The notes beneath the pieces were generated by a model that was not told the origin of the DNA, searched no databases, and saw nothing but the letters and a program-made list of their open reading frames with translations. DNA of 64,000 nt from Setoptus koraiensis (taxonomy: Eukaryota; Animalia; Arthropoda), in NCBI GenBank assembly GCA_048013815.1, contig CM106585.1, forward strand, positions 9,796,001 to 9,860,000, in the 5' to 3' direction. The translations under genes were made by a program, and so were the position numbers. Position 1 is the first letter of the stretch, and each line of letters begins with the position of its first letter. This document shows, one piece after another, positions 26,285 to 51,120 of the stretch.

Positions 26285-26447
<163 letters not shown>

Positions 26448-27259
26448 GTTGTCGTCGTCGTATCGATGCCTTTAATAGCGACACAGCAGCGAGAGTGACT
26501 AAAGTTAGCTCACAAGACAGGCGCGCACAGAGAGAGAGAGAGAGAGAGAGCACGGGCATGCATGATGCATGCGGTGGTGAGCGGAAAAAAACAACAACAA
26601 CAACGACGACGACGACAGCGCCAAGATCGAACAGATAGAAGGTTGTTTATTTGTGTCTATTTAGACTCTTTGTCACTACTACCGGTACAGTACGGGTGTC
26701 GGTGTGCCTTGAAAGTAATCGCTTGCCATATTGCCGTATTGCCGTATTGCCGTATTGGCGCAGCTATATTTATTATACAGTGTAAGTATAGTTATATGGT
26801 GCGGCTGTTAGGCTGTGTGGTAGGCAGCATAGTGTTTGTCGATAGGAAGCGAGTCGGTTATGTTAGCGCAGTTAGCTAACTGTACTCGCTGTCGCTGTTG
26901 GCTTAGCTGGCGACCAAACCGGTTTGTGTGTGTTTTTTATCACATGCATTTCGGCACTAGCGATAGCGGATGATGTCACATCATACGGTAGTAATTGTGA
27001 ACACTACAAAACGTTATATCTGTTTGTTTGTACACACACACACACACTCACAAATATAATAATAATTAGCAGTGGGAGTACAAATGAACAAATGAATAAA
27101 GCGAGCTAATGTTACGCACACACACAGCATGCACAGTCTCTGCCAGCGAGATGCAATCTCGCTCGGCTGGCTGTTATTACCATACCAGCCAGCCGAGCAA
27201 CGAGCCAGCCTAACGCCGAGCCACCCGTAAGCCATAGACAGTGCACGGCGGAGTCTATC

Positions 27260-28215: not shown

Positions 28216-28382
28216 AGAGCGTGGTGCAGTGAGCTCCCCCGTGAGTTGCCCCGGCCGACATGATTGGCCGTGTTTTATTATCAACAGTTGCTATCTGTGT
28301 GCGATGCGCCACACATCAAATCCATTCATAGGTAGCTGCAAACAGCTTGACACCAGCTCCTCATATAGGCCGCCGCAGCATC

Positions 28383-29168
28383 ATGAGGTCGGCAAGACCG
28401 GCTCAGGATCGCAAATTTGGTTGCGATCAGTGCGACAAGCGATTTTTCACTAGGAAAGATGTTAAGCGACACTCAATAGTTCATACGGGTATTAGAAACT
28501 ATCAATGTCCATTATGTCATACTAGATTCGGTAGGAAGGATCATCTAGTGAGACACGCCAAAAAGTCGTGCACCGCCAATAGCCTGCACAACACCCCTGC
28601 CGCCCCAGCCAAGCCAGTGACAGACGCAAATCATATTCAGCAGCTAAATCATCATCACAACCACAACCACAATCATCAGCATCACCAGCATCACCAACAA
28701 CACCAACCACAACCTCAACCACAACCTCAACCACAACTACACCTAGAGCAACAACAACAACTAGAGCAGCAACAACTAGACCAGCAACAACTGCAACGAC
28801 AACTTCACCAGCAACAGCAACAACAACAACAACAACAACTAGAGCAACAGCAACTGCAACAACAACTCAACCAGCAACAACAACTGCATCACCACCACCA
28901 TCACCACCAACAACAACAACAACACCAACTACAGCAACAGCAGCAACAACAACAACAGCAACAACTGCACCTCCAACTACAGCAACCCTCGCCACAGCCA
29001 CAACCACAACCACAAAGTGCCTCCACACCAGCTCCCACACCTTTCACCAGCAGTATGACCAGTGGCTTTCCTAATTGTAACTCTTACCACCACCATCATC
29101 AAACAATCGACACGTTTGAGCCGCTATATGATTACAACAACTACACCTCACCCTTCTATCAGTATTGA
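28383..29168 (+). CDS. PLAG1: PLAG-family C2H2 zinc-finger protein (two fingers plus a poly-Q/His tail); 5' end uncertain
   Basis: CDQCDKRFFTRKDVKRHSIVHTG and CPLCHTRFGRKDHLVRHAKK match PLAG1/PLAGL2 fingers 6-7 (RRFYTRKDVRRH..HTG..FGRKDHL.RH). First in-frame ATG is at 28383 with an in-frame TAG just upstream; upstream exons are possible. Confidence 0.8.
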   Translation: MRSARPAQDRKFGCDQCDKRFFTRKDVKRHSIVHTGIRNYQCPLCHTRFGRKDHLVRHAKKSCTANSLHNTPAAPAKPVTDANHIQQLNHHHNHNHNHQHHQHHQQHQPQPQPQPQPQLHLEQQQQLEQQQLDQQQLQRQLHQQQQQQQQQQLEQQQLQQQLNQQQQLHHHHHHHQQQQQHQLQQQQQQQQQQQLHLQLQQPSPQPQPQPQSASTPAPTPFTSSMTSGFPNCNSYHHHHQTIDTFEPLYDYNNYTSPFYQY

Positions 29169-29430
29169 CCAGCCATTGACAAGCAAAACCAGCCAAATCA
29201 AGCAACAAAACACGCAACAGTTTACGGGTAAACTAACATCGATGACAACATCGCGCGACGAAAACGATACGGGTAAACACCAACCAACTCTCTACTATTA
29301 CAACCATAACAACTATTATTATTATTATTATTATATATATATTATTATTATTATTATTACTATTATTATTATTATTGTATAACTATTATGAATTTTAATT
29401 AAAAATTACAATTTGTACATTTGTGTATGT

Positions 29431-30369
29431 TTATTCGGTGCAATCAACAATATGTACATCTATTACATCGCCATCTTCAAGTTCAAGCTCGTTGGCAGTT
29501 TGATCATCTTCAACTTGATCGCCGTCGATTTGAAGATGAACACTATGCAAATCTACACCCGCCCTCTCAGCATACAATCGCTTTAATTCGGAAAACGGCT
29601 GATCTTTGAAAATATTAAAAGTGTTGGCCTTCTTAGAACGACCATCTTGCAAAGTAAGCTCCAGTTGATCTGGATGCTTTTGAGGTTGCGAGGATTTATT
29701 GCAGTTGTAATCGCATGCCTCCAATATATCCGTTACGCATAGTTTCAAGGATGCGGGTGTCGCATCAGAAGGCACAAGCTCATCCTTGTGTCGCAATATA
29801 ATTGAATTCACTTGTTTGTTGAGCTTATCAGTGAGATCTTTCAAAGCAACAGCAATACTTGTGTTATATGTCATATCGAATGTGTATATTTTAAAATTGT
29901 AATACATTTTCAATGTGTAACCATAATCTTGGAAGGATGCATCTTGACAGCTTGTATTTAACTCAGATACTGCACTAGAATCATGAATTGATTCTTCGTG
30001 AAGTTCCGACAAGTCGTCAGGCAGCGCAGGAATTGCCTTTTCGTGGGTGGTTATTTCGATAATTGAGGTATCTGAATCGTCCGAGTCCACGAGAGCCTCA
30101 ATGAGATCCTGGTTTATTTCAACCCGATCGACTGCTGGTCGTGAGTCTTGCTGGCTATTTTCACTAGTGGTTTGTTGTGTGCATGTTGTGGACGTCCCTT
30201 TCCTTCCTTTGAATATAATCTCAAGTTCCTCTGCAGAATCATCATCACTGTCCGATTGATTGTAAAGCTTGTTGTTTAATTGGTTGATCTTGTAATCGTA
30301 TATATCAGCTGCGCTATCATCTGCACTGTCATCCGAGGCAACAGAATCACTAGGTTTCATGTTTTGCAT
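29431..30369 (-). CDS. NFATC2IP: NFATC2-interacting protein / Rad60-Esc2-NIP45 (RENi) family, 312 aa
   Basis: Acidic disordered N-terminus followed by two SUMO-like domains; SLD2 ..PFSELKRLYAER..LQIDGDQVEDDQTANELELEDGDVIDV. Confidence 0.85.
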   Translation of the reverse strand: MQNMKPSDSVASDDSADDSAADIYDYKINQLNNKLYNQSDSDDDSAEELEIIFKGRKGTSTTCTQQTTSENSQQDSRPAVDRVEINQDLIEALVDSDDSDTSIIEITTHEKAIPALPDDLSELHEESIHDSSAVSELNTSCQDASFQDYGYTLKMYYNFKIYTFDMTYNTSIAVALKDLTDKLNKQVNSIILRHKDELVPSDATPASLKLCVTDILEACDYNCNKSSQPQKHPDQLELTLQDGRSKKANTFNIFKDQPFSELKRLYAERAGVDLHSVHLQIDGDQVEDDQTANELELEDGDVIDVHIVDCTE

Positions 30370-30956
30370 TTCACTGGATTGTTGTGATTAATAATTGATT
30401 GCCAGTCTTCAAGTTTCATAGGTTTGGGTAGATGAAAATAGATGGAAGAAACAATCAAACTAATATTGAAAAAAAAAACAAAATGATATTCATACGATAT
30501 CATACGCGCACATTGACATGGCGCGTGATACAAATGTTACCAACGAAAATATTTTTGTTTGTAATTATTCTGGGCGGACTTTTCATCCCCATCACCTGAA
30601 ATTGTTTTGAATGTCTAAACAAACCTTACCCCGATTCTTCAGCCGGGGTGAAAAAAGGCAACATGAGGCACAAATAAAAATGGGAATGGAACGATGATCG
30701 GTCACGGGCGCAGATTCGGGTTATCATTTTGGGCTTTCTTCCCAACTACTTTTGTATCTGGCGCCATGAGTCTCGCAGTGCATGTTTTTGCATCATATAA
30801 TCAACGAACAACAATAATAATAATACCTTCTGCACGCTCGAATATTGTTTAGTCATGTGATACTGTGTGGATCTCATTACTTCTTCGCGTCCTTAGCCAA
30901 TAAAATGAAACTTGAAGATGAGCCATTAATCACAACAGCCTAATGAAATATTGAAC

Positions 30957-31559
30957 ATGAAACCCGGTGATTCTATCGCCTCCGGCGACAACAATTCTAG
31001 CACTACCGATATTAATCAATTAAACAGTAAGCCCAGCGATCGACAAGAAAACGATGATGACACCGCTGAGAAACTAGAGAAAATATTCAAAAAGATGAAA
31101 GGCACGTCTGACACATGTACACAACAAGCCGTTAATGAAGGTGGCCAGAATGACTTGCCATCATCCAATGCCTATGATATGTTGGTTGGTAAGATAGCGA
31201 CAAGATTAAATATTGTTTGTCATCCAGATCCCTCTGTTACCCTGAAGGCGATTCGTATGACACTAGAGGAACAGTTGAAACAAAACAATGAGCCAGTCAA
31301 TAGAGAGTTTTCTGTTGCAGCTAAAGGACAAAAAAATAGTTTGGCTAAATTTACAGTGGATGATATAGCATTGCCCGCCTCTAAGGATAGTGATCATGAC
31401 GCTGACCATGCAGCGAAGGTGCTCAAATTACTCTATCTTGATGATTTGAGACTACTTCAGACTCAAGTGAATGAAATAATAGGCTCTGTCCAGAGCATCA
31501 CAACTACCCGACCTCTGATCCATTCTGAGGGCAACAGGGTCAAGAACAGGAACAGCTGA
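30957..31559 (+). CDS. RTRAF: Chimeric RTRAF (CGI-99/C14orf166)-like protein: NIP45-derived N-terminus plus RTRAF C-terminal half, 200 aa
   Basis: C-terminal HPDPSVTLKAIR..L and HAAKVLKLLYLDDLRLLQTQVNEIIGSVQSIT match the RTRAF RLL region (HDDYLVMLKAIR..; EAAQILRLLHIEELRELQTKINEAIVAVQAI). Residues 1-66 are homologous to the neighbouring NIP45 N-terminus. Confidence 0.8.
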   Translation: MKPGDSIASGDNNSSTTDINQLNSKPSDRQENDDDTAEKLEKIFKKMKGTSDTCTQQAVNEGGQNDLPSSNAYDMLVGKIATRLNIVCHPDPSVTLKAIRMTLEEQLKQNNEPVNREFSVAAKGQKNSLAKFTVDDIALPASKDSDHDADHAAKVLKLLYLDDLRLLQTQVNEIIGSVQSITTTRPLIHSEGNRVKNRNS

Positions 31560-31791
31560 TTTACAGACCGAGAAAACTCGATGGATTTCTTCTTTTGCTC
31601 CGAGAGAAACACGCCTTTTCTACGCACTAGCACACATTCTTCCGGCAACATAGTCTGATTATTTTTTGTTTGGACGTGAATGGGTCCGAAATTGTTACTG
31701 TATTTCGAAAAAAAAACGTCCGGCCTAATAATAAAAAACTCTGCCCTACCGTTTTGTGAGAAATAGTTAACTTATAACTGTAAGTTTTACC

Positions 31792-31959: not shown

Positions 31960-32528
31960 ATGTCTATCGGAGTGCCGATTAAGGTCCTGCACGAGGCGGA
32001 AGGTCATGTTATCACGTGCGAAACCACCAATGGTGAGTATTTGTTTCCCGACTATTATCGCATCACCTTTTTGTCGTTGGTTTTCTTCATGAATCAATTC
32101 TTAATTTGTTTAAAATTCACAGGCGAAGTTTACAGAGGCAAACTTGTTGAGGCTGAAGACTCGATGAACTTACAAATGAGCCAACTGACAGTAACCCACC
32201 GAGACGGAAGGATATCACAAATGGAGAATGTATTCATTAGGGGAAGCAAAATTAGATTTCTCATACTTCCCGATATGCTTAAAAATGCCCCCATGTTCAA
32301 GAAGCTTGGCACGAAAGGGCAGACTGCCACTACCACAGGTAGAGGCAAGTCTGCCATACTGAGAGCACAAGGTAAGATAAACGAGAGCAGAAACAAACTT
32401 CTCGTAGTGCATCAATTTTTTATTCGTCTATATCAACACTCCGACTTTCTCCTCTATTTTCCCGCTCACGTTTAGTTGCAAGAGGACGCGGTCGCGCCAG
32501 GTCAATCATTGCAAGGAGAGGTAAATAG
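31960..32528 (+). CDS. SNRPD3: Small nuclear ribonucleoprotein Sm D3; exons 31960-32032, 32123-32371, 32476-32528; 124 aa
   Basis: [58 protein letters not shown] tail; canonical GT-AG introns, all phases consistent. Confidence 0.97.
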
Positions 32529-32566
32529 AGTTATTTGTATTGTAAAAAAAAACATTCTTCAACAAC

Positions 32567-33523
32567 TCAACGAACCGTCGAAATTCCATCGTCATCAATA
32601 AAGAATGGTACAGAGAATCCTATCTTGGAGACATTATGTATAGTCTTGAGAATCACCGCTTTCCTTAGAGTTGAGTTTGGGTATCTTTTGAACAGCTCGC
32701 TAACATCTGGTATCTTCTCCAGTCGGATTCTATGATCAATGGCGTTCGTCCACGGTCTTGTGAACGAAGACTGGTTGTCTGAGCTGGTAATGATAACAAT
32801 AACATTTTTAGTTATGGCAATGTTAGTGAGCAAACGCATCACTTCATGTATATAGACTTCGATATTGTCCTTAATACTGAGCAGATCTTCTTGTATCAGG
32901 AATGATAATGAATCAATAATGATACATTTGACTTCATTGCGAACATCACAGTGTACTAATTGGTTAAGAAGGTGTACCAAATCTGAAAGCTTTGACGGTC
33001 GTGCAATTTCAATACGCCTCAAATATTTCGAATCCATTTCGTTTTTATCTATCACCTTATTTGCTTTTTGAGCAGTATAGGTGGCTATTCTGTCCTGATT
33101 AACATCAAAACTTGAGGCCACATAGAGTATATTAAATTTTTCATAATGACTGAGAATCTGTCCACACAACAGGTAGCACATTTCTGTTTTGCCACATTCT
33201 GTATCTCCTAAGAATTCCACTATCTCTTGAGTCTGGTAACCATCATCTAGAGCCTTTGTGAGCTCGGGTATTCCGGTTGGGCAGAGTTTGCTCCTTTGTA
33301 AGGTTATTTCCATCCAATGATTGAGACTATGACATGGCGACAAGTATCTGTTCTTGGCAGAGTCTTTAATATTTTTTAACTTGTTATAGGGTATCTTGGT
33401 TTTATTCTTGATTTCCATGAGATCGGTCATGACGAGATCATTGACAGTCCAAATGTCAGCATTGTTCAATTGTTCCAAGAATTCTTGCGTGACGTGCTCT
33501 AGCTCGGTCGATAGAAAGGCCAT
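32567..33523 (-). CDS. RAD51D: RAD51 paralog, RAD51D-like, intronless, 318 aa
   Basis: N-terminal TV.DL..DL helical domain, TGI..L...LD.G, Walker A GDTECGKT, LYV.S, Walker B IIIDS. Confidence 0.85.
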   Translation of the reverse strand: MAFLSTELEHVTQEFLEQLNNADIWTVNDLVMTDLMEIKNKTKIPYNKLKNIKDSAKNRYLSPCHSLNHWMEITLQRSKLCPTGIPELTKALDDGYQTQEIVEFLGDTECGKTEMCYLLCGQILSHYEKFNILYVASSFDVNQDRIATYTAQKANKVIDKNEMDSKYLRRIEIARPSKLSDLVHLLNQLVHCDVRNEVKCIIIDSLSFLIQEDLLSIKDNIEVYIHEVMRLLTNIAITKNVIVIITSSDNQSSFTRPWTNAIDHRIRLEKIPDVSELFKRYPNSTLRKAVILKTIHNVSKIGFSVPFFIDDDGISTVR

Positions 33524-45699: not shown

Positions 45700-47458
45700 G
45701 CTCTCGGCTTATTTAAGACTCGGTGCTGCCAACACTGGGCTGGTGATTATGGAAGTCATTGCTGAAGAACACTCTCAGTGTATGCTTCACAACAAATTTG
45801 TCAACCAGCCGTGCCATTTTTGTCGAATTTTATTTGCATCGATAAACGCATAAACTAGCCCGAGAATTCAAGTGACTCAATCTGTAGAGTTGACAGGTTT
45901 ACCGAGGCACTCTGTGGTCAGTTACGCATTTCAGTGTGTTGACAGCGGCCTTTGGTCAGTCGTTGCCGAACCAAACATGAGTGCACCAGAAAAACCTCAA
46001 ACTGTTATGCGGATTCCCCGGTGCTTGCGTGTCCAAGTTCGCCTCGGTCCTCACAGGGACTTTGATTTCATATATTGTTGCACACTCCACGGACGAAGTT
46101 CTGCGAAATCAACGATGAACACGCATGCAGGCCAGCATTCAATTTTATCGATCGACGTGTGCACTAAAATATTTGAAAGATTTTCAACGTTTGAGAGAAT
46201 TCTACCCCGATCAGCAGAATGTATTAGCGATTGTAAGCGGTGACAACTTTCGACGTCCAGCGAATTGTAGCTTGAGACTCGAGCGGATTATCCCTTGAAA
46301 GTTTCAAGTTGAAACGGATACAAAGTCAGGCTACACAATGCTCCGTCTGGAAACAAGTGATCTCTTTGGCTGTGGCTCTAAAAGCGTCTCACCACTCCAT
46401 GTACCAGACGGACACGTTTGACGATGTCCGGACTCCGGAGCCAGAGCGAATTGTCGGGTTACAGGCTCGTCCAGCCAGAGGCCTGCAAACTGTGGTCGCC
46501 ATGTGTCGCCAGTGGCTATTATTGTGCTCTTGTTGTTGCCAATTAGAGTTGGCGACTTGTCGCTTTGAAACTCGCGCTAGCTTTGGCCCTACTATTCTTT
46601 TGTCCACTTTATGTAAGCGCACAATCATCATTTATATTATGCAGCACACAGCATTTACAGTACTGGGTGTTGCAATCAACTATTGCTCTTTGAACTGTTT
46701 ACGCTGCGCTGCATTATGTACAGAGTGTGTATTCTCACGTGAATATCACCATCCCATTGCAGATGTACAGATGTGTGCATGCTTGGTAGGCTTGCAAACG
46801 CGGCATATTCACGCCGGAGCCGTTGCACAAAGATTTGGCACAGTGTGTGTTTTTGTGCGTAACTGGTTGAGTGCAACACACTAGACAAGACTTGTTGTTT
46901 ATTGCACATTGTAAAAGTTATACGAGCACGCACACGTCTAGGCACGCACACATGCGTACTAGTGATACTGGCGATTGTACAGCTCACACTCACAGACGAG
47001 CGTATATACAGTATTTATACGCCCATGCCTACAGTCGCCTATTCACTTCTCTTCGTCGGATTTTTTCACACACATTTATCGCTCAACAAAATATTTTTTT
47101 TTGTTTTCATTAAATCAGATTGGACAAATACGCAGCCACTAGCTTCTGGAATATCCACCACACACTTACCCTAATTACGTTATCTCAACCTTCGCCAACA
47201 TGAGTGGGCTATCCGACGAAGACAGGAAGGAATTATTGGCCCTCATATTGGGATTCCTGCAGCAATCTTTAAATGATTTTCCCATTGGTATGACGCTTCG
47301 CGATTTTGAGCGAAACTTTCCAGAAAAATGCGATGAACCCGAAGATTGGTACACGCGCTACAATTGTAAAAACGCTGTCGAGGCCCTGCGAACGGTGCCA
47401 GAAGTTGCCAAGCTAACCGTGGGCTATGGAAATCAATTGAAAATTGAGTTAAATACTG
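45700..47458. repeat. Left arm of a large imperfect inverted duplication (partner ~49776-51120)
   Basis: 45784-45924 is identical to the reverse complement of 50891-51031 (141/141). 45925-46370 aligns with 50470-50890, 46900-47110 aligns loosely with 50120-50470, and 47113-47458 aligns with 49776-50120. Confidence 0.95.
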
Positions 47459-49578
47459 CCAGTAAACTACATGACACTCATCTCACCGACATGGTCAAAG
47501 GCCAAAAGGGCAAATCAAAAAAGAGAGCACCCCGAGGTCGACCCTTCTATCCCTGTTCTTTTGGCAACAGGAGACCACCGCAAGGACCATTTAACAGCAG
47601 AAGACCCCCCATGCCGGCGGCATACAATAGCAGGAGACCCACGCCAACATCGAGCGTCAACAGTGCCAATAGATCCACCCAACAGCAAGCCGCCAGCGCA
47701 AACAAATCTGCACCAGAATATTTCAGACCCAAGAATACGCCAGAAGCTCCGAGTATAAGGTCCGCTCCAGAACCGTTCAAACCGAAACCTACGCAAGAGG
47801 CTGCCCCAAGTCACTGGTCTACGCCGCCGGCTTCAAGCACAAAAAACGCGCCAGAAATCGCCAATACGAAACCCGCGCCAGAAGCCGCTGGCGCAAAACC
47901 GGCGCCGGCCTTCAGCACTAAATCCAATCAAGCATTGACCTCAGCACATGCAAGTGCGCATTCACAGATTAAACCGAGCAAATTCGTTTCCGAAAACAGT
48001 ATACGACGCGAAGAGACAACAAATATCCCCAAAAAACCTGCTCCGAAAGCCAGTGTTCAACACAAAGAGTGGCTCAGACAAAAAATAGTTGACTTACTTA
48101 CGCGAATTTCGTCAGAAATAAAGTTAATATTCCTGCCCACCATTTTTCGAACGGAATACGAGGAAACTTTAGATGCCACTGAATACGGCTACTCGCGCAT
48201 TATAGCTTTATTTCAGGACCCTATTCTGAGCAAGGATATTGAAATCAATCACAAGCATCCTTACACCACCATTAGTTCAAGATTGAAATCGAGGCCGGAC
48301 GGAAAAGAGAATAGGATCAACGGATCATCAGCGAATTCAACTAAAACATTTTTATCATCCAACCATCACGAGTCTCTTGATAGTTTATCTCAAGACACTG
48401 GAATAGAATCACCTTTTGAGGCTATTGATCCATTCAACCTGAAAAGTATGCAGCAAAGCCTACAGAAATCTTCTGTTCCTATCAAGGAAAAGAAGAAAAA
48501 CATCATCCCTATTGATGATGAAATTAAGTACAAAACCTTCCGAATGATCATGACCAGTGACACTCCATTAGAAATCGATAACTGGCAAAATAAGTTTGAA
48601 TATGAAACCAAGCTCAACATAAGAGTGAGCTACTATGGCTTCACTAATTGTGAAGACTTCTTCAAAGAGTTGGTCAAAGATATGCCCATCAAAATTGAGA
48701 GAAATAACGAAGGCCGCTCGATCGCTTCTTTGACATCCCCAGACGATTTAAAATTATGGTTATACGCTAAAATGGCCAAAAATGAATATAAATCAATTTA
48801 TGTTTTAAGTGATAAGTATGAATTGATAGCAAATCCCAAAGATCGATTCACTTTCAGGAGAATTGGACAGGAAATGTTGGATTCAGGTTACTATCCGGTA
48901 GCATTATGTTCAGCGAAGAATCCTTCTCATATCTGGTTGAAAATGCATAATGAACGATTCTACGAGGATCTTAGTTTCATAGAAACTACAATGTGCGCAT
49001 ACCAAGATTATACCGATTATAATGCTAAAACTAAGTCCTCCATGTTACCAGGTTTGCCTATATTCTTTTTTAGACAAGGACTACCATGCTCCGTTTATGA
49101 CCAGCACGTCAACAAGTGGTGCCGTGCTATAATCGTGTCCATCGTGGGATCTGTACCACAGACTAATCAAGAAATCGACAATCTCAAAGTGAATCTTTTA
49201 CTAGTGGACTACGGTTTAGAAAGAAAAAATATACCAGTGAAACAAATACATTGCCTTCTCAAAGACCATATGAGAACACCAATCGTTCCAATCCGGTGCC
49301 ATCTAGACGGTGTAAGGCCCGTATTTGATGAGCAAAGTGATGTTCCAGGCGAGTGGAGTGGAAAAGCAAAAGTTATTCTACAGGAATACGTCAACCCTCC
49401 GTCCATACTAGCTTGTAAATTTATCAACGAAAAGAACGACCAAGATGGAACTTCAAATGATACTCATTTACCGGTAACTAGTTGGGGAGTGGAACTATGT
49501 GATACCCGTGGTGACGAGGATTGTTTCCTCCATTCTTCATTGATTGAGGCTGGATTAGCTGAAAGTATTAATCACTAA
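47200..49578 (+). CDS. TDRD5: TDRD5/tejas-like piRNA-pathway protein (three LOTUS domains plus one extended Tudor), intronless, 792 aa
   Basis: LOTUS-like units at the N-terminus (..GMTLRDFE..C.NAVEAL..VPEV), at LRQKIVDLL..EYGYSRIIALF and at IKYK..SYYGFTNCEDFF; Tudor-SN region HIWLKM..KWCRAII..LVDYG..PIRCHLDGVRP..WS. Confidence 0.8.
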   Translation: MSGLSDEDRKELLALILGFLQQSLNDFPIGMTLRDFERNFPEKCDEPEDWYTRYNCKNAVEALRTVPEVAKLTVGYGNQLKIELNTASKLHDTHLTDMVKGQKGKSKKRAPRGRPFYPCSFGNRRPPQGPFNSRRPPMPAAYNSRRPTPTSSVNSANRSTQQQAASANKSAPEYFRPKNTPEAPSIRSAPEPFKPKPTQEAAPSHWSTPPASSTKNAPEIANTKPAPEAAGAKPAPAFSTKSNQALTSAHASAHSQIKPSKFVSENSIRREETTNIPKKPAPKASVQHKEWLRQKIVDLLTRISSEIKLIFLPTIFRTEYEETLDATEYGYSRIIALFQDPILSKDIEINHKHPYTTISSRLKSRPDGKENRINGSSANSTKTFLSSNHHESLDSLSQDTGIESPFEAIDPFNLKSMQQSLQKSSVPIKEKKKNIIPIDDEIKYKTFRMIMTSDTPLEIDNWQNKFEYETKLNIRVSYYGFTNCEDFFKELVKDMPIKIERNNEGRSIASLTSPDDLKLWLYAKMAKNEYKSIYVLSDKYELIANPKDRFTFRRIGQEMLDSGYYPVALCSAKNPSHIWLKMHNERFYEDLSFIETTMCAYQDYTDYNAKTKSSMLPGLPIFFFRQGLPCSVYDQHVNKWCRAIIVSIVGSVPQTNQEIDNLKVNLLLVDYGLERKNIPVKQIHCLLKDHMRTPIVPIRCHLDGVRPVFDEQSDVPGEWSGKAKVILQEYVNPPSILACKFINEKNDQDGTSNDTHLPVTSWGVELCDTRGDEDCFLHSSLIEAGLAESINH

Positions 49579-49745
49579 TCTGCTAAAATTCGGTTAACAA
49601 TTGTTCTTTTCTGTGAAATCGATAAGCAATCGTTACATTTGTTAAATAAAGAAATGTATACATAATCATAAGTACTCAATGTATCACGACGAACTATGAT
49701 CTGTCTTTTACCTTTTTAATTCATTTAGCACAGAAGGCCTGAATG

Positions 49746-50033
49746 CTAATAACCGTGGGCTAATAACCTGGATTGAGTGTTTAACTCAATTTTTATTCGT
49801 CCCTCATAGCCCACGGTTAGCTTAGCAACTTCTGGCACCATTCTTAGTGCCTCGACAGTGTTGCTACAATTGTAGCGCGTGTACCAATCTTCGGGTTCAT
49901 CGCATTTTTCTGGAAAGTTTCCCTCAAAATCGCGAAGCGTCATACCAATGGGAAAATCATTTAAAGATTGCTGCAGAAATCCCAATATGAGGGCCAATAA
50001 TTCCTTCCTGTCTTCGTCGGATAGCCCACTCAT
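49746..50033 (-). CDS. LOTUS-domain-only mini-gene (inverted partial duplicate of TDRD5 5' end), 95 aa
   Basis: First 86 codons align with TDRD5 codons 1-86 without indels or stops; novel 9-aa tail and stop; ATTAAA on the minus strand at 49720-49715; conserved 5'UTR. Could be an unexpressed pseudogene. Confidence 0.6.
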   Translation of the reverse strand: MSGLSDEDRKELLALILGFLQQSLNDFPIGMTLRDFEGNFPEKCDEPEDWYTRYNCSNTVEALRMVPEVAKLTVGYEGRIKIELNTQSRLLAHGY

Positions 50034-51120
50034 GTTGGCGAAGGTTGAGATAACGTAATAAGTTTAAGTGTGTGGTGGATATTCCAGAAGCTAGTGGCTG
50101 CGTATTTGTCCAATCTGATCTGTAGCAGAACAATATTTCGTTATGTGAGATCTGTTTGCGATAAAATCCAACGGAGATAAAGATGCACATTCGTAACTTC
50201 CCTACAATCTGAAAACTTCTGAAGTTATTTATTACTAGTGGGCAGTAAGGGCGATAAGGGCAGTAAGTGGTGAGGGAGTGATGGGAGAATACGGGAGACC
50301 CGGGTGAACCATGCTGTGTTCTCCCGTGTTCTCCCATGACTCCCTCACCACTTACTGCCCTTATCGCCCTTACTGCCCGAACACTATTTATTACATAATA
50401 TTCGGTCGTCTGTGAGTGTGATCTGTATTGGCTCGCGCGCGCCTAAACGTACTCGTACAAACTTGCAGTGTGCGAAGAGATCACTTGTTTTCAGAAGCAG
50501 CATGGTGTAGCCTGACTTTGTATCCGTTTCAATTTGAAACTTTCAGGGGATAATTGGCACGCTTCACTCGAGTTTCACATGCTACAACTCGCTGAATGTC
50601 GAAAGTTGTCACCGCTAATCCAGACTGCTGATCGGGGTAGCAATCGTATGTGAATCCTCTCAAACGTTGGGGATCATTCAAATATTTCAGTGCATACGTC
50701 GATCGATAAAATTGAATGCTGGCCTGCATGCGTGTTCATCGTTGATTTCGTCCGTTGAGGGTGCGACAATATATGACATCAGAGTCTCTGTGAGGACCGA
50801 GGCAAACTTGAACACGAAAGCACTGGTGAATCCGCATAACAGTTCGAGGTTTTTCTGGTGCACTCAAGTTTGTTTCAGCAACGATCGATCTAACTGACCA
50901 CAGAGTGCCTCGGTAAACCTGTCAACTCTACAGATTGAGTCACTTGAATTCTCGGGCTAGTTTATGCGTTTATCGATGCAAATAAAATTCGACAAAAATG
51001 GCACGGCTGGTTGACAAATTTGTTGTGAAGCCTACACTATGGGTGTTCTTCATCATTGACTTCCATAATCACCACCAACACAGTGTTGGCAACGCTCCGT
51101 CGAAAAGAAGTCGAGAGCTG
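49776..51120. repeat. Right arm of the large imperfect inverted duplication (partner ~45700-47458)
   Basis: Reverse-complement alignment to the left arm as described; carries a MITE and lacks ~530 bp present in the left arm (46370-46900). Confidence 0.95.
50236..50386. mobile_element. hAT-type MITE / foldback element, 151 bp
   Basis: Exact 8-bp target-site duplication TTTATTAC (50228-50235 and 50387-50394); termini TAGT(GTTC)GGGCAGTAAGGG, with the left end lacking 4 nt; 59-bp internal arms (50240-50298 and 50320-50378) with only 2 mismatches around a 21-nt loop. 8-bp TSD and TAG terminus are typical of hAT. Confidence 0.85.

Follow-up and report, generated by a model that had tools for sequence, protein, structure and literature searches.

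How does a gene come to carry the front end of its neighbour, and what does the recipient lose in the exchange? The question is raised by a locus in a 64,000-nucleotide stretch of Setoptus koraiensis DNA (assembly GCA_048013815.1, contig CM106585.1, positions 9,796,001 to 9,860,000), referred to here as the window, in whose numbering all coordinates are given. A plus-strand gene for RTRAF (CGI-99 in the human tRNA ligase complex) and a minus-strand gene of the NIP45/Rad60 type lie head-to-head in this stretch and share their 5' ends. An initial annotation of the locus proposed that an inverted duplicate of the NIP45 5' end had replaced the N-terminal domain of RTRAF. Here, we argue that the chimera is real and that its history is a different one: it is quite probable that NIP45-like sequence was copied once into an RTRAF that was already headless, leaving the interface module of the protein unchanged.

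A divergent gene pair with a shared 5' end

The start codons of the two genes are separated by 587 bp, in agreement with the roughly 590 bp first estimated, and the sequences on either side form an inverted repeat. An inverted-repeat search recovered three collinear pairs of arms, 30144-30288/31011-31155 (145 nt, 70%), 30327-30392/30925-30990 (66 nt, 77%) and 30394-30430/30894-30930 (37 nt, 73%), so that overall 30144-30430 pairs with 30894-31155. The DNA alignment begins within the 5' untranslated regions (5'UTRs), as previously described, about 55 nt before either ATG, and reaches to about codon 68. The two products align by BLASTP with 39/73 identities (E 3e-18), and a recount from both translations gives exactly the 28 identities that had been reported for an ungapped block of 48 residues.

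Beyond the shared part, the plus-strand gene continues as the C-terminal half of RTRAF/CGI-99. Its product scores 70.5 bits with the Pfam RLL family (PF10036; cut-off 24.6, E 2.6e-19), and the match spans positions 93-239 of the 253 in the profile. The gene is a chimera, as had been proposed: its first ~70 codons, 5'UTR and proximal promoter stem from the neighbouring NIP45-like gene and the rest is RTRAF. The part of the RLL match that reaches back to profile position 93, within the NIP45-derived sequence, was judged to be compositional and to reflect an acidic linker; the NIP45-like protein itself has no RLL match at E values up to 1.

The inverted repeat also extends beyond the 5'UTR into the promoter, which had escaped the initial annotation. 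A pair of 21-nt elements, one facing each gene, is conserved as 'CATGGCGCG..ATACAAA(A)GT', and a local alignment as good as theirs was obtained in 2/500 shuffles. Both arms of this element are kept in L003, the nearer of two relatives that carry the same locus, and the NIP45-side arm is kept in the other, L001. The arms of L003 also have 32 nt in common just upstream of the 5'UTR block (z 9.9, 0/500 shuffles). The promoter pair and the L003 block together therefore indicate a degenerate palindrome with arms of ~400 nt and a spacer of ~210 nt. The conserved element may serve the divergent promoter as a transcription-factor site, or may just be part of the old palindrome.

Table 1. Features of the NIP45-like/RTRAF locus (window coordinates; ORF, open reading frame; uORF, upstream ORF; L001 and L003, relatives with the same gene pair; X5, RNA-derived assembly).
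Feature	Position	Strand	Description
NIP45/Rad60-type gene, ORF	29431-30369	minus	312 aa; acidic conserved N-terminal region and two SUMO-like domains
Assembled NIP45-like mRNA	29413-30395	minus	X5 contig, 983 nt, 0 mismatches
Left arm, donor copy	30144-30430	minus	NIP45-like 5'UTR and codons 1 to ~72; N-terminus also in the L001 and L003 NIP45 orthologues
NIP45-side promoter element (CATGGCGCGTGATACAAATGT)	30517-30537	none	21 nt; inverted pair with 30748-30768, 86% complementary
RTRAF-side partner promoter element	30748-30768	none	Inverted mate of 30517-30537
RTRAF-side proximal promoter/transcription start site block	30850-30904	plus	Similar to the proximal promoter of NIP45 in L003 and L001
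Chimeric short RTRAF mRNA	30880-31644	plus	X5 contig of 771 nt, letters 1-765 placed, 0 mismatches
12-codon uORF (MKLEDEPLITTA*), putative relic	30905-30943	plus	Collinear with the L001 native RTRAF N-terminus MDSDDRLITATKK and with the NIP45 5'UTR
Chimeric short RTRAF coding sequence	30957-31559	plus	200 aa from the ATG (ORF opens at 30951)
NIP45-derived insert	30972-31166	plus	Codons 6 to ~70; in window and L003, absent from L001 and all other short RTRAFs
RTRAF interface module	31167-31559	plus	Predicted helices 69-83, 92-111 and 145-184

Expression of the chimera

Is the chimeric gene transcribed, and does its mRNA contain an upstream exon? Evidence comes from X5, an assembly that can be recognized as RNA-derived because its contig for the nearby SmD3 gene skips both GT..AG introns (32031>32122 and 32369>32474). 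The chimeric transcript exists in X5, which answers the question of expression posed with the initial annotation. Its contig is colinear with the genome, with no joint and no unplaced 5' part. The mRNA has therefore undergone no splicing, contains the uORF and lacks an upstream exon. An exon further upstream that would supply the canonical N-terminal domain was considered and rejected, both from this colinear transcript, which starts at 30880, and from tblastn searches of the window and the loci of five relatives, which gave E 0.1 at best. No X5 contigs lie over 30396-30879. Contigs from a second run, X1, with 95-99% identity, cover 31097-31288, across the junction between insert and RTRAF, as well as 31482-31713.

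Two raw RNA runs that carry the species label of X5 (X8 and X11) contained zero reads from the locus, even on SmD3; the organism is not in them, and hence they provide no test. The label of X5 may refer to a host plant or a mixed sample, in which case X5-X7 would be RNA from infested tissue.

A headless RTRAF family

According to the initial annotation, the duplicate replaced the domain with which RTRAF pairs with FAM98. The CH-like domain (human Phe2-Gly93; profile positions ~1-92) is not in the window protein, whose RLL match starts at position 93. In tblastn searches with seven canonical N-domains against the window and contigs of five relatives (L001-L005), nothing better than E 0.1 was found, and the canonical C-terminal halves matched every locus. 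The missing domain is thus a feature of this protein, as claimed. Was it removed by the copying event?

Searches for related proteins argue otherwise. An HMMER search that was exhaustive over 1.84 billion cluster representatives returned, as its best-scoring tier, ~32 clusters with E values between 1e-76 and 3e-22, matched from near residue 1 and with proteins of 146-282 aa. After a gap in score came canonical RTRAFs of ~245 aa, from E 2.5e-15, which were matched only from their residue ~130 on; the best of these is from Dinothrombium tinctorium, a trombidiform mite. A profile search gave 41 clusters at 90% identity, among them UniRef A0A6G1SCM3 of the eriophyoid Aceria tosichella. The short members tested start at RLL profile positions 113-141; the canonical controls P0034 and P0037 cover 1-253. 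In a tree built on the C-terminal part only, a single branch divides 31 short from 20 canonical sequences (Shimodaira-Hasegawa-like approximate likelihood ratio test 99.9). The other contigs with a short RTRAF are compact and leave no space for an upstream exon, and the close neighbours of the gene on them are unrelated (Cox20, an F-box protein, an amino-acid transporter and V-ATPase G).

The CH-like domain is absent from all of the 40+ short RTRAFs found, and its loss appears, from these comparisons, to predate the NIP45 copy. The proposal that the domain was eliminated and supplanted by the inverted duplicate itself, with a new minimal subunit arising in this species, has the real chimera and the absent N-domain in its favour. 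The same domain is also absent, however, in 40+ relatives with neither a NIP45 neighbour nor an insert, and the proposal is contradicted by L001, which has the neighbour, lacks the insert and is nonetheless headless. We regard it as scarcely tenable. Of the statement that the chimera loses the FAM98-pairing domain, the absence stands; the loss itself is older and is found in relatives without the insert.

Two further observations concern the family searches. In the tree, the short family has a main clade of 27 members; the pair formed by the window and L001, P0031, and P0024 fall outside it in unresolved positions. P0005, a protein of 4090 aa with 30 'RLL' stretches, was discarded as a false positive: the protein is of the NACHT-LRR type, and its match arises from leucine-rich repeats that mimic 'LKLLYL'. 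Its score against the short-RTRAF profile (E 5e-64) calls for caution by users of that profile.

Polarity and timing of the copying event

The direction of change can be read from the two relatives. The Logan contig L001 has the same head-to-head pair, with an RTRAF of 146 aa that reads MDSDDRLITATKKMKPGDFAEYDML... and contains no NIP45-like insert; in it the motif 'KKMKPGDFAEYDML' is contiguous, as in the family consensus. In L003, the nearer relative, the RTRAF gene has the insert at its start, in frame. Because the L001 motif, 'KKM(K/R)P.D.AEY(D/E).L', is also the consensus of distant short RTRAFs, L001 shows the ancestral state, and the insertion that separates 'MKPGD' from 'A(E)YDML' in both the window and L003 is derived. 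The timing of the copy is given by this presence and absence in three species together with the family consensus.

The copy displaced a native leader of ~13 residues. The old RTRAF start appears, from sequence alignment, to survive as a relic in the 12-codon uORF of the chimeric mRNA, whose partner in a four-way alignment with L001 is MDSDDRLITAT. A short uORF is also present in the NIP45-like 5'UTR, its product beginning MKLED in the window (30358-30420) and MKFED in L001 (1080-1140); the counterpart in L003 (769-830) starts with GTG, not ATG.

At the nucleotide level, identity is 86% between the two RTRAF copies and 69-75% between these and any NIP45 copy, which points to one event before the split of window and L003, with no continuing conversion. 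Ongoing concerted evolution was rejected, since the sequences cluster with their paralogues and not according to species.

An alternative is that the long palindrome was ancestral to all three species and that the insert was secondarily deleted in L001. In line with it, the synonymous distances from the RTRAF copies to L001 NIP45 (0.55-0.66) are not above those to window and L003 NIP45 (0.86-1.15), and by this measure the copy does not look younger than the split from L001. However, 'KKMKPGDFAEYDML' in L001 is the exact contiguous motif of the distant P0002, P0006 and P0007, and a deletion would have had to restore precisely this motif as well as the native upstream start MDSDDRLITATKK. We consider such a deletion quite improbable.

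An older layer of homology may underlie the pair. The 5' coding region of L001 RTRAF resembles the NIP45 5'UTR and start in 21/27 nt (z 3.8-5.7). The motif 'KKMKPSD' is ancestral in the RTRAF family, and the NIP45-like protein begins MKPSD. By a small margin we favour an earlier, short copy from RTRAF to NIP45, which would later have seeded the larger conversion. A scan of Joint Genome Institute metagenomes for further NIP45 relatives with which to polarize this older layer found none.

The retained interface module

In human CGI-99, residues 128-231 are the interface module, and the helix formed by residues 195-231 is part of a bundle of four helices with FAM98B and DDX1 that is seated on RTCB; the key residues are Arg205, Leu206, Leu207, Leu212 and Arg213 (PMC13586351). 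These elements can be recognized in the short protein. The family profile matches a single PDB sequence, that of RTRAF in the zebrafish tRNA ligase complex (9i8v_E, E 1e-20), of which residues 123-172 (the middle helices) and 192-242 (helix 145-184 of the window protein) are aligned. In an AlphaFold2 model based on a 31-sequence alignment, the three helices of the module have a predicted local distance difference test score (pLDDT) above 90. Helices 69-83 and 92-111 represent the middle interface helices (human ~Pro128-165), and the bundle residues are K157, L158, L159, L164 and R165 at human R205, L206, L207, L212 and R213. Foldseek with the model ranked 9i8v_E first, although weakly (E 0.029, template modelling score 0.19), as is expected if the helices fold only inside the complex.

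The window protein therefore resembles human RTRAF in its interface helices (human ~128-165 and 195-231), in its bundle residues and in a Pfam score well above the cut-off. It differs in having no CH-like head (human 2-93), and thus no FAM98-CH-pairing surface, in carrying a foreign leader of ~65 residues and, together with its sub-clade, in lacking the 'PKTD..GR' tail. The tail, 'A(N/D)PKTD..G(R/K)' in full, is missing from the window protein, which ends '...SITTTRPLIHSEGNRVKNRNS', and from that of L001, which ends '...SITATRLSLIG'; it is also lost in P0031. The same three proteins (window 31482-31559, L001 2020-2073, P0031) carry 'DL(R/K)xLQ' where most short RTRAFs have 'DQKQLQ'. By profile match and interface module, the protein is a member of the RTRAF family; the head and, in this sub-clade, the tail are the features not found in it.

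Could an RTRAF of this kind work? Mutations in the CH-domain head leave assembly of the human complex undisturbed (PMC13586351), and the N-domain of CGI-99 is dispensable for assembly (PMC8668186). A minimal human tRNA ligase complex composed of RTCB, DDX1(696-740), FAM98B(200-239) and CGI-99(102-244) is stable and more active (Kroupova et al. 2021, PMC8668186). Its engineered CGI-99(102-244) fragment has a close natural equivalent in the short RTRAF. Unlike the laboratory construct, the mite truncation is natural, old and fixed in every family member found. Because human CGI-99(102-244) supports an active minimal complex, the short RTRAF may be taken as a working core subunit, and it is likely, by analogy with the human proteins, that it still serves as the interface subunit of the RTCB complex. 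Selection on the RTRAF part is purifying, with a ratio of nonsynonymous to synonymous substitution rates (dN/dS) of 0.28 between window and L001; in the 23 post-insert codons available from L003, the protein is identical to that of the window, with two synonymous differences.

Another explanation is that the short RTRAF is an extra, sub-functionalized paralogue with some other or regulatory role, and that a canonical full-length RTRAF elsewhere in eriophyoid genomes does the tRNA ligase job. The search was confined to the window and the relatives' contigs, the trombidiform mite Dinothrombium has the canonical form, and a word-indexed search listed no canonical RTRAFs at all and so is uninformative on Aceria. 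Nevertheless, the short family forms a long branch of its own, is under purifying selection and keeps the residues of the bundle contacts, and no canonical N-domain was found near any of six loci. A paralogue of this sort appears unlikely to us.

A newly remodelled minimal tRNA ligase complex in this species, the further suggestion of the initial annotation, did not emerge from the analysis, since headlessness is an old family trait. A remodelled headless complex may exist, but it would be a long-standing feature of all short RTRAFs, a family of which two members are placed in Eriophyoidea, and not a product of the chimera.

The NIP45-derived leader

The initial annotation also held that the chimera had gained an acidic SUMO-pathway leader together with a promoter. 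The promoter, 5'UTR and start were indeed copied. A SUMO-pathway function of the leader was not demonstrated; the copied piece excludes the SUMO-interacting-motif (SIM)-like sequences of the donor, the region is predicted to be disordered and its evolution is almost neutral. Residues 1-68 have a pLDDT of ~50 in the AlphaFold2 model, and the dN/dS of the insert between window and L003 is 0.62, indistinguishable from 1 (Fisher p 0.32). One SIM candidate in the copied leader, 'LEIIF', was rejected: the corresponding residues are ENIF and KNIL in the orthologues and EKIF in the RTRAF copies.

The RTRAF copies have undergone three indel events, each with a length divisible by three, and the insert is free of stop codons in both species; simulated random substitution alone keeps its frame open 13.5% of the time. 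On balance we lean towards a leader that is for the most part a passenger, disordered and tolerated, with a reading frame that the downstream domain protects.

Is the leader part of the functional protein at all? The working product might start from the internal Met75 (YDM-LVGK), or translation might be mainly throttled by the uORF. Such a scheme would accommodate the weak constraint on the insert, its disorder, the upstream uORF and the fraction of simulations in which the frame stays open. Against it, the ATG and its context are conserved in window and L003, indels come in threes and the original junction was in frame. Moreover, Met75 lies inside helix 69-83, so a start there would truncate the first interface helix. 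We think this no more probable than the paralogue explanation, and perhaps a shade less.

The leader contains a basic patch, KKMKG in the window and KKRKG in L003, that resembles the ancestral 'KKMKP'. It is a speculation that this patch is a nuclear targeting signal.

The donor gene and its surroundings

The donor is well conserved. Its N-terminus is nearly unchanged in all three NIP45-like orthologues (dN/dS 0.10-0.20), and the window protein is 81% identical to P0003 from L003 and 68% identical to P0004 from L001. The start shared with the relatives is the ATG at 30360 (MKPSD); the window has an extra in-frame ATG (MQNM) three codons ahead of it. Pfam places a Rad60-SLD/ubiquitin domain at residues 238-307 (Rad60-SLD E 2.5e-11), and the linear di-SUMO2 chain 4bkg_A matches the protein in two stretches (E 2.9e-16). 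The protein ends '...VHIVDCTE' and therefore has no conjugatable C-terminal Gly-Gly; both orthologues end alike. At residues ~86-105 there are SIM-like sequences, 'DLIEALVD' and 'SIIEI', which the orthologues keep as sequence motifs. The donor resembles the RENi family (Rad60/Esc2/NIP45-NFATC2IP) in its acidic, partly SIM-like N-terminus followed by two SUMO-like domains without di-Gly, with the difference that the piece copied into RTRAF ends ahead of the SIM-like motifs. A protein search yielded no named NIP45/NFATC2IP orthologue, and two unlabelled close relatives only.

Several other features of the window deserve mention. The SmD3 (SNRPD3) gene lies at 31960-32600, with two short introns at 32032-32121 and 32370-32473. 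A C2H2 zinc-finger ORF at 28347-29400 contains very long poly-Q, poly-H and (PQ)n tracts, and a (TTA)n microsatellite comes after it at ~29300-29380. The tracts yield many spurious inverted-repeat pairs with 26285-26461. A young, gene-scale palindrome occupies 45741-51074, with arms at 47114-47457/49776-50119 (94%) and 45741-45924/50891-51074 (97%). Inverted duplications seem to be recurrent in this genome, and gene-scale palindromes may be a habit of it.

A model for the exchange

In the course of events that we propose, the CH-like head would have been lost once, in the ancestor of the large short-RTRAF family, and in one sub-lineage the short RTRAF gene would have come to lie head-to-head with a NIP45/Rad60-type gene. 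Later, after the L001 lineage had split off and before the split of window and L003, inverted copying resembling gene conversion would have overwritten the proximal promoter, 5'UTR and start of RTRAF with the NIP45 versions. The copying would have run ~200 nt into the NIP45 coding sequence and ended at an illegitimate junction that was in frame. The old RTRAF start would thereby have become a short uORF, with translation now beginning at the NIP45-type ATG. The outcome would be an expressed protein with an acidic, disordered and weakly constrained leader of ~65 residues ahead of the unchanged, selected interface module.

Some points weigh against this account. The tRNA ligase role, with RTCB, DDX1 and FAM98 as presumed partners, is deduced from the short RTRAF and its human counterpart, and a canonical full-length RTRAF might lie elsewhere, the search having taken in the 64-kb window and the contigs of five relatives. 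Loss of the 'ANPKTD..GR' tail in the sub-clade of the window, where most short and canonical RTRAFs keep it, could signal functional drift. Expression rests on the one assembled run, X5. The only family member with a taxon label is that of Aceria tosichella, nearly all others coming from unlabelled contigs. Finally, the synonymous distances (~42 sites) are too noisy for an independent dating of the copy.

How does the event compare with known ones? Where interlocus gene conversion or an inverted duplication has produced chimeras at divergent (bidirectional) promoters, one sees the same inverted arms, a similar arrangement around a spacer (here ~210 nt) and joint copying of promoter and 5' end, and the copy is fixed here as well. 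The present case differs in that the recipient is an unrelated gene, and in the apparent older and shorter homology that runs the other way, from RTRAF 'KKMKPSD' to the NIP45 start, and may have seeded the event.

Implications

Ashwin has been described as a vertebrate-specific nuclear import factor that sits on the CH domain of CGI-99 (PMC13586215); in vertebrates, then, the FAM98-pairing CH surface also carries Ashwin. This leads to a broader idea, namely that eriophyoids run a naturally headless tRNA ligase, that leaders with basic patches took over nuclear targeting or regulation, and that the chimera is adaptive through its NIP45-type promoter. We consider this doubtful, if slightly less so than a sub-functionalized paralogue. 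If it is true, RTRAF, and perhaps FAM98 too, shed the head module on which Ashwin docks, and the ancestral 'KKMKP' and the NIP45-derived 'KKMKG/KKRKG' are conserved basic patches of lineage-specific leaders.

A full-text literature search found no paper linking eriophyoids with RTRAF. The novelty of the locus lies in the combination of a natural, family-wide headless RTRAF with a datable capture of promoter and N-terminus from a divergent neighbour. As a case of gene evolution it is a clean one: a divergent pair has exchanged promoters, start codons and coding sequence via an inverted repeat, with one species caught before the copying event (L001) and two after it (window and L003). For the tRNA ligase, a mite protein family in which RTRAF consists of the interface module alone is the natural counterpart of the engineered CGI-99(102-244). 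Its existence is an argument that, outside vertebrates, the tRNA ligase complex can do its core job without the CH head, and the short RTRAFs offer a natural system for asking what purpose the head module serves.

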